From positions 363,959 to 427,958 of the forward strand of contig NIVC01000673.1 of NCBI GenBank assembly GCA_002269645.1: a DNA stretch of 64,000 nucleotides, written 5' to 3'. The notes under the pieces are model-generated. The model was not told the origin of the DNA. It worked only from the letters and a program-made list of their open reading frames with translations, and did not search any database. Below, piece by piece: positions 52,529 through 64,000 of this stretch (its first letter is position 1; every line of letters begins with the position of its first letter). A program made the translations under genes and the position numbers. Origin of the DNA: Macrostomum lignano (lineage: Eukaryota).

Positions 52529-55500
52529 ATGGGCTGCGAGATGGCCAAGCTGAGGCGGCTGGACATCTCGCTTGAGAACGGATTGGGAATCTACAACCCT
52601 GGAGATCTGGTCAGCGGCCTCGTCTGCGTGGACGTTACTGACAGCACGGAAGTTCACGGTGAGAGTTTTAACGTGGCTATTTATTTCCCTGATCGTGTTT
52701 CAGATGGCAAATCTAGCCAGCATCACTGATGCAGGAATATAATGGATTGCTAATCTAGCCAACACATCACGGATGAAGGAATAGAATGGATTGCTAATCT
52801 AGCCAACACATCACGGATGAAGGAATAGAATGGATTGCTAATCTAGCCAACACATCACTGATGAAGGAATATAATGGATTGCTAATCTAGCCAACACATC
52901 ACGGATGAAGGAATAGAATGGATTGCTAATCTAGCCAACATCATCACTGATGAAGGAATAGAATGGATTGCTAATCTAGCCAACATCATCACTGATGAAG
53001 AAATAGAATGGATTGCTAATCTAGCCAATTATCAAGCGCACTGAGTAACCCGGATGAAAAGCTGCTGCAGTCCTTAGCTGATCAAATAATCTGCAGGGAA
53101 TTACAAGCTGATGCCATCATCCTTAAGCCACGGATGGGGTAAAAAGTAGAAAAGTACACAGTAGTAGAAGCTTCAAACTTTGGGAGGGGGAACCCAGATC
53201 GTTAACCTATTAGTCAAGGCATTTGGCTTTGACATTTGAAATCCAGCAGCACGTAGTAAACGGCGAATCAGGGCTGCGCTCACTCGCAAATTATCTATCA
53301 ATCATGGATGGCCAATCTAGCTGGTTCGAGTTTAAAAGACAACTATTTAGAATAATATTAGATATATAAACGGTTTAAAAGAGGCGCAAAATACATTTTA
53401 ATTTCCACTACCAGCAGTTGGTATCGTGTGTGGTCCAGCAGAGTATAGAAAAAGCCTTGGGAAGATGGGAAAAGACGAGAGAGAGAGAGAGAGAGAGAGA
53501 GAGGTCGAATGGGGGAGCGAGAGGCAGTAGGGGATTCCCTGATCGGACCAAAGGAAGGGGGGCGAAGCGTGCAGCGAGAAGTGGATCGCGCTCGGACGGG
53601 GGAGCCCGGGCAAGAGAAGAGCCAGAGAGAGAGAGAGAGAGAGAGAGAGAGACGAGAGAGAGAGAGAGAGAGAGAGACGAGAGAGCGCGAGAAAGATAGC
53701 AAAATGGCTTAGTTGCCAGGGTTTTTCGAAACGAATGACGGAGTTTATCCAGCCTGGCGCATTGCCCAGTTCTGAATTGCCCTGAAAGTGGGGGAGGGAG
53801 CTGGGGGAGCTAAAAGAGGGGGCAGGGCAGGGCCGGTGCTGCACTAGAGTGTCTCTGCAGCTTGGCCGCAAAGAAGGCCGCATAATTCAAGCTATACGGT
53901 GGTGCTGCACCATGCCTAACCGAATCCAGAGAGAGAGTGTGTGTGTGCGTGGCCCACCGCATCGCCTGCATGGGAGAGTCTAAAAAAGCGCAACACCCAC
54001 CCCGCCTCTGAGCCATCGAAATGGGATGTCACCCTGCTAACGGGGGACGATTTATGCTAGAGAGGTTTTGGGTTTTGTATGGGGCGCGACCCGCCTACCA
54101 GGAGTTTATGCGCGTGTCGGTTGAAACCGAAGCGCGGTCACTGCATGAGTTCGGCCATGTATTTTTCATAGGCCGGCAGAATGGGATGGGGAGGGAGGGT
54201 TGCTTGATTTCCCAGCAACTGCAGGCTGCTGCAGTGTAGCAACAAATTTATGGCAGCATACCGAGCCGCTGAGTCAATTAACCACAACAGCATGCATGAG
54301 TTCTTAGAGCAAAAACGCATCAAAGTATCTTATAGTATTTTCTGCCTGCCTCTAATGTTTTACTCTATTTACATGAAAATCATATAGAAAACTGGACGAA
54401 AATGCATCAGTAGCGACAGCTTAAATACAAAAACAGCGAAAAAACTACAACTGGTTCTTAATTGAAGAATCTTTTTGTAAGGAAGCTCAGATTTTGTTAT
54501 GCTGAAAATGACGATTTACATTTTTTGCAGCTCATGTATACTCAGCAACATCGAAAAGTCGCCATCACAGAACATTCCGTCTGTGGTCGCCACTTTTAAG
54601 AGAGCAAGTAAAGTCTCAATCATCAGGCAGTCTCAGGCAGACTTGAGTTGAGGAATGAAGTGGGGAGCGGTGTGCGAGGGTTGGGCGGATTAAAGCTATT
54701 AAAGATATTTCAGAATAGTTTATGAGAAAGCGCTCACTGGTGCATAGAGTGGCGAATTTTTAATGTTGCTGAGCATATACTCTCGAAATATACCTGGTAC
54801 ATTTATCTTGCTTCAAAAATCTGACATACTCGCACCTGTATAATAAACAAAATCGATTGCTTTCAAATCTGCTTTGAGCAAAATAATTTGCATGCGAGGC
54901 CATTTGTCGTTGTGGGAACCGAGACATTTAAACAAAATGATAAACATTCTTTGTCTGAGACACCCGTTTCCACTTTTCAGTCCCCATCTTCTAGAAAACT
55001 TTAAGATTTAGTTTAAATTTTGCAAACGAAAATAGCCTCGCATGATGAGAATAATTTGCAGATACCAGTAAAAGCAAAACGCTAATGTATAATGTACAGC
55101 ATCTGAATGAATACTTAAAGCAGGAGCTGAAGGACGGATTTGTTATATCATAATTTTCCGGTTCAATAAGCAAACGGCCGCGCTACTGTCATGGTGCAGT
55201 CTCGGTTGTCCAAGCTGATCCACCCTAACAGAGCATTTCGTCAAGATGTGCCTGATAACTTCATCGGTCTTCACATGGCGCTTATCGTAGCGCTTGAGCA
55301 TCTCCTTGAGCATCTGCCTGGCCTCAGTTGTACTATCTGTAATCAACGCTACCGCGTGAAGCTCTTCAAAGTCGGCACTCCGCCAATCGCCGCGGACATC
55401 ATCCAGAAAGGCTTTGGTAGCAGATCCAGCTTGATCAGGGCTATCAGAGAAACTCATTCGCAGAAGATACAGCAAAACAACAAAGTTCAAGTAGACTCTC

Positions 55501-64000: not shown

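Follow-up and report, generated by a model that had tools for sequence, protein, structure and literature searches.

Ankyrin-fused cGLRs are known from the 2023 survey of animal cGLRs by Li et al. (bioRxiv 10.1101/2023.02.22.529553 / PMC9980059; Fig 1C, S2A, 4C and Table S2), in which the ankyrin repeats were read as protein-protein or protein-ligand interaction modules. Among the proteins in that survey is PAA45980.1 of Macrostomum lignano, a 936-aa protein with Ank_2 domains that is screen entry #90 of Table S3, and an ANK-deleted form of it was cloned for the biochemical screen (PMC9980059). Five M. lignano family members were cloned in that study (PMC9980059). In Table S3 construct #90 does not carry the label "active", so it is not one of the 15 selected active enzymes, and the accessible part of Table S5 does not list M. 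lignano (PMC9980059). The window analysed here is a stretch of 64,000 nucleotides at the end of contig NIVC01000673.1 of the M. lignano Mlig_3_7 assembly, and it contains a sister copy of the PAA45980.1 gene (copy 1) next to a second, related gene (copy 2; Table 1). Copy 1 is a three-module ANK-cGLR gene that probably works like other cGLRs, and copy 2 is a tandem paralogue of it that is disrupted in this assembly.

Table 1. Features of the two ANK-cGLR copies, in positions of the window
Feature	Position	Strand	Remarks
Copy 1 gene	58138-55143	minus	three exons, BOX15_Mlig022265g5/g1
Copy 1 exon 1	57228..58138	minus	ATG at 58138 and ankyrin array, aa 1-303 plus 2 nt; ORF and donor checked
Copy 1 intron 1	57129..57227	minus	99 bp, GT..AG, phase 2, pyrimidine-rich acceptor
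Copy 1 exon 2	56761..57128	minus	NTase N-lobe with spine helix, G363-S364, D385, D387
Copy 1 intron 2	56675..56760	minus	86 bp, GT..AG, phase 1
Copy 1 exon 3	55143..56674	minus	D444, Mab-21_C helical lobe, family-specific C-terminal module, stop codon
Ankyrin array, aa 6-300	57239..58123	minus	about 7-8 repeats, acidic (pI 4.7)
NTase domain, aa 304-645	56019..57229	minus	spans both introns, basic (pI 8.85)
G363-S364	56953-56948	minus	exon 2
D385	56887-56885	minus	exon 2
D387	56881-56879	minus	exon 2
Predicted third catalytic acid, D444	56624-56622	minus	exon 3
C-terminal module, aa 646-905	55239..56018	minus	about 260 aa, mostly helical, conserved across paralogues
Gene-conversion tract, copy 1 side	57290..58032	minus	743 bp, 98.8% identity to 61381-62123, aa 36-283
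Gene-conversion tract, copy 2 side	61381..62123	minus	counterpart of 57290..58032
Copy 2 gene	62271-59262	minus	unannotated
Copy 2 exon 1	61304..62271	minus	ankyrin array, open in the window
Copy 2 exon 2	60847..61174	minus	NTase N-lobe, 1-bp deletion at about 61131/61130
Copy 2 exon 3	59262..60760	minus	reading frame open, shares 51% aa identity with exon 3 of copy 1

Copy 1 is an intact, transcript-supported fusion of an ankyrin array with a cGAS-like nucleotidyltransferase. An initial annotation of this DNA had proposed that the ankyrin ORF ends at a phase-2 GT donor with an acceptor 99 bp further on, and both are present in copy 1 (donor ..TCTTT/GTAAGC, acceptor TTTTTGTTTTTCAG/G). The second donor is in phase 1 (..CTGTTG/GTAAGT) and is followed after 86 bp by the acceptor ..AATTGTAG/TG. 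When joined, the exons give the single frame of 2811 nt and 936 aa that had been proposed, with one terminal stop, and the translation matches the deposited M. lignano protein PAA61004.1/PAA78648.1 at all 936 positions (100% identity), which places the splicing of copy 1 far beyond chance. RNA-seq and transcriptome assemblies were the sole source of the Mlig_3_7 gene models in GenBank (PMC5730564), and PAA61004.1, a transcript-derived protein, includes the intron 1 junction. A literature search for expression data did not find the identifier Mlig022265, and an Rfam scan of the whole window gave zero matches.

One caveat is that M. lignano has polycistronic, trans-spliced units and that about 7% of its assembled transcripts are multi-gene precursors (PMC5730564), so the fusion could be an annotation artefact in which the ankyrin and NTase genes are separate cistrons of one precursor RNA. 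However, both junctions are canonical GT-AG and are joined in a single frame without a stop, the sole stop after the ankyrin array is intronic, and no AATAAA was seen in intron 1 of either copy. The annotation pipeline also breaks units up wherever it meets a trans-splice or poly(A) site (PMC5730564), and the ANK-then-NTase order is repeated in dozens of paralogue clusters that are about 30% identical to one another. An artefact of this kind is therefore highly improbable.

Besides the transcript-derived model, both profile and structure searches uphold the assignment of the enzyme part to the cGAS/Mab-21 type. Of the Pfam domains expected from the initial annotation, Ank_2 and Mab-21_C were matched (Mab-21_C, PF20266, scored 27.1 bits, above the cut-off of 24.1) but the N-terminal Mab-21 model gave no match to the copy 1 protein. 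A search of the PDB with the family profile returned only cGLR1 (8gjy, 8e-8), cGAS (4e-6 to 3e-5) and MAB21L1. The AF2 model of the domain (pLDDT 81.9, pTM 0.85) predicts a bilobal cGAS-type fold with a Pol-beta NTase core and a C-terminal helical lobe. When this model was compared with the PDB by Foldseek, as the initial annotation had suggested, the top 50 matches were all cGAS at a probability of 1.00, with about 390-410 aligned columns and a target TM of 0.5-0.61. Local hhalign against human cGAS (E=1.5e-4, probability 52%, 129 columns) covered the C-lobe only, where LRVSTSILE was paired with WRLSFSHIE of cGAS and LKSYHAKS with SSYHVKT; the copy 1 protein also contains MPHFFLKD. The N-lobe was aligned with human cGAS neither by local hhalign nor by forced global alignment.

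The candidate active site lies in the motifs LGSFGDGWG (aa 362-370), ESDIDF (383-388) and SMDIVY (442-447). These fit the cGLR active-site pattern of Li et al. 2023 (hGS ... [DE]h[DE]h - X50-90 - h[DE]h), with G363-S364, then D385-I-D387-F and, after 54 residues, M-D444-I. In the AF2 topology GS ends one strand, DxD begins the next and D444 is on a later strand. D385, D387 and D444 would thus correspond to E225, D227 and D319 of cGAS, a correspondence that is drawn from the matching fold, the topology of the strands and the spacing of the motifs rather than from residue-level superposition because the N-lobe is unalignable by sequence.

The ANK-cGLR genes, to which copy 1 belongs, form a large family whose expansion is specific to M. 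lignano. The profile gathered 197 cluster representatives at E<=1e-3, the strong matches that were sampled were all from M. lignano and mostly had 3-20 ANK repeats at the N-terminus, and the family comprises at least 60 clusters at 50% identity. The catalytic motifs are conserved in most of the 17 paralogues compared (about 30% identity overall), and the pI of the NTase module ranges from 6.1 to 9.3 among paralogues. Two paralogues, PAA59752.1 and PAA93319.1, combine Mab-21, ANK and a caspase domain in one predicted chain.

This conservation bears on whether copy 1 might instead be a non-signalling Mab-21-like scaffold, as in MAB21L1/2, that makes no second messenger. Such a role would agree with the lack of a Pfam N-terminal Mab-21 match, with the model of paralogue P0002, which has no GS...DxD segment, and with some A1 rows that show H, S or E at the position of the third Asp, and none of the five M. 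lignano members that were cloned, nor any other, has a reported activity (PMC9980059). However, G363, S364 and D385 (G60, S61 and D82 of the construct) are invariant or nearly so, and DxD and the third Asp are kept in most of the 17 paralogues. Copy 1 thus does not have the loss of acidic residues of the MAB21L1/2 type, and Mab21L1/2/3 were excluded from the cGLRs by Li et al. because they are missing a functional active site (PMC9980059). Active-site conservation across such divergent paralogues is hard to explain without catalysis, which is for that reason favoured, and a scaffold role is unlikely.

By analogy with other cGLRs, a catalytic copy 1 product would act in the cytosol as a sensor and would keep its NTase inactive until it engages a ligand. 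The engaged enzyme would then make a second messenger of the nucleotide kind, with a cyclic dinucleotide as the likeliest candidate, that a downstream receptor would read, and the ankyrin array and the C-terminal module are putative regulatory or partner-binding parts. The enzyme could also be active with a product that is not a STING-type cyclic dinucleotide, such as an OAS-like linear 2'-5' oligonucleotide or another signal for a non-STING effector. According to Li et al., cGLR signalling is largely lost in flatworms, and there are products that they could not identify (PMC9980059); the two caspase-bearing paralogues also hint at other effectors, and a literature search found no paper that settles whether STING is present in M. 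lignano. Nevertheless, the nearest structures and sequences are cGAS and cGLR1 rather than OAS. Pfam found no OAS-type domain in copy 1, and OAS is absent from the PDB sequence matches and from the top 50 folds. These results make a product of this other kind quite unlikely, and a cyclic dinucleotide remains the preferred candidate.

In the ankyrin array of copy 1 (Pfam Ank_2 E=1.7e-48, Ank E=1.4e-37), six repeats of 33 residues are clear, preceded by an N-terminal cap and followed by one or two degenerate units, so that the earlier estimate of about 8 repeats was a fair one. Ankyrin repeats are protein-binding modules, and this is in favour of a reading in which the array itself is the putative sensor, a pathogen or host protein ligand gates the synthase and the enzyme is no nucleic-acid sensor. 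Nearly all strong paralogues have ANK arrays, and their very different lengths would suit a diversified recognition part. The spread of NTase-module pI among paralogues and the outcome for the ANK-deleted construct #90, which was tried with nucleic-acid ligands and is not among the selected actives, also favour this reading. However, the copy 1 NTase has a pI of 8.85, and Li et al. tied values above 8.5 to dsDNA/dsRNA sensing (PMC9980059). The ankyrin exons of the two copies are also becoming more alike through gene conversion rather than diversifying, and ANK arrays are equally conceivable as adaptors for downstream partners or as autoinhibitory parts. Gating by a protein ligand is therefore doubtful, and an enzyme that senses in the manner of other cGLRs is preferred.

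The C-terminal module (AF2 pLDDT 78, pTM 0.80) is followed by a low-confidence tail (aa 906-936). No relatives of the module were found by Pfam, by PDB profile search or by Foldseek (best E=0.24), and its profile, when run against 5.8 billion proteins, found only one further protein, an M. lignano protein with ANK and Mab-21_C. This module of about 260 aa was absent from the initial annotation. A broader proposal is that the M. lignano ANK-cGLR family is a flatworm-specific innate-immune receptor repertoire unlike cGAS-STING, for example a protein-ligand- or ANK-gated synthase coupled to non-STING effectors, caspases among them. We consider this proposal unlikely, but if it were true, such a repertoire would have arisen in a phylum from which cGLR signalling is otherwise thought to have disappeared.

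The initial annotation had described two intact fusion genes in tandem, both spliced in phase and both with intact catalytic motifs, and this stands for copy 1 but not for copy 2. The 129-bp and 86-bp introns of copy 2 do exist, with donors and acceptors where they had been placed, but the resulting coding sequence is 2795 nt, which is no multiple of 3. Past the junction, ELSAEMKRSGFTKESR is read in this frame before a TAG at 61125-61123 ends it, ahead of the catalytic motifs. GSFCDG and DSDIDF are downstream of this stop in another frame, and SMDVVY is likewise present in the DNA. Because the frame is broken, the window holds one intact fusion gene and one disrupted copy rather than a working pair. 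A different acceptor, with its AG at 61162-61161 and the exon starting at 61160, would restore the frame but was rejected on a reading of the sequence, as this candidate has a poor pyrimidine tract and would replace the start of a conserved helix. The models P0005 and P0007 were also rejected as models of copy 2, as both are truncated, come from other contigs and are of the copy 1 type.

Where a duplicate locus elsewhere (L001) has GG, at about 61131/61130, copy 2 of the window has a single G, and in that duplicate locus exon 3 of copy 2 is broken, at about window position 59646, by a non-LTR retrotransposon fragment. Mlig_3_7 is a PacBio-based, polished assembly of a highly duplicated genome (PMC5730564), and for this reason the 1-bp lesion could be an assembly error, though most likely copy 2 is a decaying or non-functional copy. 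Copy 2, disrupted in the Mlig_3_7 assembly, is an older tandem paralogue that shares about 74% DNA identity and 51% protein identity with copy 1 in the enzyme exons. The ankyrin exon of copy 2 has been homogenised with that of copy 1 through a 743-bp gene conversion.

The suggestions that the gene was hidden by splicing and that it might be novel did not hold, as both GenBank and UniProt already have an annotation for it (UniRef A0A267FXT7), and ANK-cGLRs, as well as the sister copy, are in Li et al. 2023. The copy 1 gene, the ANK+Mab-21 architecture and the cGLR class are thus already known. Since the gene, its spliced model, its architecture and its class are all in the public record and a clone of the enzyme part exists, the locus adds little as a discovery; as such it is ordinary, with modest remaining interest. 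The most useful leads are the C-terminal module and the caspase-bearing paralogues. M. lignano may suit the study of what ANK-fused cGLRs sense because it is a transgenic, RNAi-amenable laboratory model.

Compared with known systems, copy 1 is closest to the BOX15_Mlig022265 proteins, from which it differs in nothing of substance. The window adds context to BOX15_Mlig022265, namely the damaged tandem paralogue, the conversion tract and the satellite DNA around them. PAA45980.1, which has the same length of 936 aa, falls in the same 90%-identity cluster and is one residue apart in the printed sequences (H to R, ITAL[H/R]MLRNY). The ANK-fused cGLRs of Li et al., such as that of the coral Stylophora pistillata, share with copy 1 a cGAS-like NTase core and ankyrin repeats, whereas the M. 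lignano family stands apart as a lineage-specific expansion of very large size and adds a C-terminal helical module for which no match was found outside the species. Vertebrate cGAS and insect cGLR1 (PDB 4k97, 4ley, 8gjy) resemble copy 1 in the bilobal Pol-beta-type NTase with a Mab-21 helical lobe, in the GS...[DE]x[DE]...[DE] pattern and in a basic catalytic domain. However, identity in the structural alignments is 11-16%, the loop from GS to DxD has 20 residues in copy 1 and 11 in cGAS, and copy 1 has the extra ANK and C-terminal modules and no Pfam N-terminal Mab-21 match. MAB21L1 and MAB21L2 (PDB 5eog) belong to the same superfamily, with a weak profile match (E=0.07), but they are without a predicted functional active site (Li et al., PMC9980059), whereas copy 1 keeps the full acidic triad.

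The minus strand of 55143-62271 holds two tandem sets of three open reading frames, which the initial annotation described as two spliced genes fusing ankyrin repeats to a cGAS-like receptor (cGLR). For copy 1, junctions were read base by base and exons joined by script, and every coordinate and phase proposed for copy 1 was correct (see table). The joined coding sequence of copy 1 is 2811 nt and encodes 936 aa, with the only stop at its end. A search with the non-ankyrin part found 100% identity to the 936-aa 'hypothetical protein BOX15_Mlig022265g5 [Macrostomum lignano]', named 'Mab-21-like HhH/H2TH-like domain-containing protein' in UniRef. 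The junctions and this deposited protein make copy 1 a real feature that had been read correctly. It is not hidden by splicing, as had been thought, because the full spliced model was already deposited. GenBank models of M. lignano derive solely from StringTie/TACO RNA-seq assemblies and a de novo transcriptome, with coding sequences called by TransDecoder (PMC5730564), and therefore the deposited model provides independent RNA-level support for both junctions of copy 1.

Features of copy 1 and examples of the minisatellite arrays in the window (a slash marks the splice junction)
Feature	Position	Size or unit	Strand	Detail
Copy 1 exon 1	58138-57228		minus	ends ..TCTTT/GTAAGC, phase 2
Copy 1 intron 1		99 bp	minus	acceptor TTTTTGTTTTTCAG/G
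Copy 1 exon 2	57128-56761		minus	ends ..CTGTTG/GTAAGT, phase 1
Copy 1 intron 2		86 bp	minus	acceptor ..AATTGTAG/TG
Copy 1 exon 3	56674-55143		minus	3' exon of the joined coding sequence
Minisatellite	26321-32214	23 bp x 253
Minisatellite	21527-24407	23 bp x 125
Minisatellite	16555-18464	20 bp x 98
Minisatellite	34489-35915	19 bp x 76

The copy 1 protein is encoded at two sites in GCA_002269645.1, the window locus at the end of NIVC01000673.1 and a second locus (L001) on NIVC01002079.1. L001 duplicates the whole two-gene locus, its copy 1 being 99.8% and its copy 2 98.3% identical. This duplication is explained by the DV1 line, which carries extra chromosomes, and by its assembly, in which duplicated blocks of at least 95% identity add up to 180 Mb (PMC5730564). 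The 90%-identity cluster of the protein (BOX15_Mlig022265) holds the identical PAA61004.1 and PAA78648.1, the 936-aa PAA51161.1 and PAA45980.1, and four other models, two of them truncated and two WormBase-style. Among the cluster proteins P0005, P0007, P0008 and P0009 (other contigs and annotations), the truncated copy-1-type models (372 and 334 aa) result from frameshifts, and the WormBase-style ones skip a 24-residue stretch with the third catalytic Asp in it (VSQPAMTTQASHVTPSMDIVYSYA). All four defective models probably reflect errors of assembly or prediction, or else additional decaying copies.

The description as tandem fusion genes held for copy 1, which is intact, and for the splice sites of copy 2, which follow the same pattern (129-bp and 86-bp introns), but not for the copy 2 reading frame, which is broken. 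Its joined coding sequence is 2795 nt and past the first junction reads ELSAEMKRSGFTKESR, then TAG (61125-61123), while the catalytic segment (..VIAAAADVVQ..LGSFCDGLGCNL..DSDIDFAEIM..) lies in another frame. The window copy lacks one G of a GG found in L001 (AAAGGAAAG-TCGC versus AAAGGAAAGGTCGC), where the same site reads ..FTKERSLVIAAAADIVQ..GSFCDG..DSDIDF.. in a single frame, and the missing G could be a single-base assembly error. L001 copy 2 is damaged at other places: one base pair is missing from an A-run in exon 1, and exon 3 is interrupted by about 2 kb (L001 6649-8637, corresponding to window ~59646) that the window does not have. A 662-aa ORF in this insert encodes a reverse-transcriptase YADD motif followed up by an RNase H-like region, and the insert is therefore a truncated non-LTR retrotransposon. 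Copy 2 has no gene call at either locus, and this, together with lesions that differ between the loci, points to a decaying copy. An AG at 61162-61161 (exon start 61160) might offer copy 2 an alternative acceptor, with which its catalytic exon would rejoin the frame of the ankyrin exon; it has a poor pyrimidine tract and would lose the conserved helix start.

Exons 2 and 3 of the two copies share about 74% DNA identity (51% for exon 3 protein), whereas neither introns nor flanks can be aligned; judged by sequence, copies 1 and 2 are old paralogues. Within the ankyrin exon, a sharply bounded 743-bp block (58032-57290 versus 62123-61381; aa 36-283) is 98.8% identical, with 9 differences (4 synonymous, 5 non-synonymous), and is also found in L001. 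This looks like the signature of a recent gene conversion limited to the ankyrin array. Much of the 1.1-kb spacer between the copies is taken up by a (TACT)n microsatellite (58591-59077; n about 122), which gives rise to a spurious plus-strand 189-aa 'LLTY' ORF. Nearly all of positions 1-53000 consists of minisatellite arrays with 15-46 bp units, which cause strong local GC and AT skews. An Rfam scan of the entire window returned no matches.

In the copy 1 protein, Pfam gave matches to ankyrin families (Ank_2 at E=1.7e-48) and to Mab-21_C (27.1 bits against a cut-off of 24.1), but the N-terminal Mab-21 model did not match. In A1, an alignment of 17 paralogue regions roughly 30% identical to copy 1 (G60, S61 and D82 are G363, S364 and D385 of the full protein), six positions (G60, W66, G75, H95, G115 and C149) show no variation and three (S61, D82 and P138) almost none, and the DxD and third Asp are retained in most rows. 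In the PDB, the A1 profile matched nothing besides cGLR1 (8gjy, 8e-8), numerous cGAS entries (4e-6 to 3e-5) and MAB21L1 (0.07), and each of these matches lay in the helical lobe. Using hhalign, LRVSTSILE, LKSYHAKS and PHFFLKD were paired with WRLSFSHIE, SSYHVKT and ENYFIPE of human cGAS, in a sequence that agrees with entry #1 in Table S3 of Li et al. The predicted cGAS/Mab-21 structure was borne out by an AlphaFold2 model of A1 (pLDDT 81.9, pTM 0.85): the best 50 Foldseek matches in the PDB were all cGAS (probability 1.00), spanning some 390-410 columns, the entire catalytic domain, at target-normalised TM 0.5-0.61. In the model, GS closes the first strand, D385-x-D387 opens the next and D444 lies on a later strand, a spacing that fits the active-site motif of Li et al. 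No sequence alignment of the N-lobe to cGAS was obtained, and we therefore infer from the model that the catalytic residues would be equivalent to those of cGAS.

A third module, absent from the initial annotation, occupies aa 646-905 (55239-56018). It is kept among paralogues (RLPDCA.TARE, DSAWKFCF, FP, Y.NF.AL) and, modelled alone with good confidence, is mainly helical with a few short strands (pLDDT 78, pTM 0.80). It has no Pfam match and no PDB sequence match, and Foldseek gave nothing significant (best E=0.24, vague helical-repeat resemblances). A profile search of 5.8 billion proteins added just one, an M. lignano protein with ankyrin repeats and Mab-21_C; among the searches made, the module was seen only within the M. 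lignano ankyrin-cGLR family.

Exhaustive HMMER against 1.84 billion cluster representatives placed 197 of them at E<=1e-3, and 60 of these relatives reached E<=1e-30. All 12 sampled matches with E<1e-11 were from M. lignano, and the eight weaker ones sampled comprised one from M. lignano, one Dreissena Mab-21_C protein and six from large, eukaryote-sized ENA assemblies. Most strong matches have 3-20 ankyrin repeats before the nucleotidyltransferase (NTase). Two separate paralogues elsewhere in the genome, P0059 (PAA59752.1) and P0079 (PAA93319.1), join ankyrin repeats and the Mab-21-like NTase to a C-terminal Peptidase_C14 caspase domain (E ~1e-25 to 1e-27); provided that each is a true single transcript, sensor and protease share one chain. 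The paralogue P0071 has an extra AAA_33/zeta-toxin-like kinase domain, and the EGF/DSL part of P0058 is probably a merged gene model.

Ankyrin or TPR modules fused to some cGLRs appear in Fig 1C, S2A and 4C and Table S2 of Li et al. 2023 (bioRxiv 10.1101/2023.02.22.529553 = PMC9980059). Table S2 includes PAA45980.1, a sister copy of the window's protein, with Ank_2 at 10-103, 77-164 and 143-233, and further M. lignano accessions; Table S3 includes five M. lignano constructs (#89-93), of which #90 is PAA45980.1 from RERSRVQTAAADVV onwards, the NTase and C-terminal part without ankyrins (PMC9980059). The ankyrin-deletion test proposed in the initial annotation has thus been partly done. The Table S3 'Note' column labels 15 active enzymes picked for in-depth work and is empty for #89-93 (PMC9980059); this places them outside the selected actives and is not proof of inactivity. 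The gene, architecture and family assignment of copy 1 were in the public record before, and the enzyme part had been cloned. Residual value attaches to the ligand, product and receptor of the enzyme, to the C-terminal module and to the paralogues with a caspase domain.

A protein ligand sensed by the ankyrin array, as first suggested, is a possible but unsupported reading. With a pI of 4.7 the array is acidic; the NTase module, at pI 8.85 (paralogues 6.1-9.3), is basic and lies within the range that Li et al. tie to nucleic-acid sensors (PMC9980059). The array might just as well be an adaptor or an autoinhibitory part. For copy 1 itself the fold, motif, architecture, transcript support and family expansion are established. 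By analogy with cGAS and cGLR1, it would be expected to act as these ligand-activated synthases do, yielding a nucleotide second messenger.
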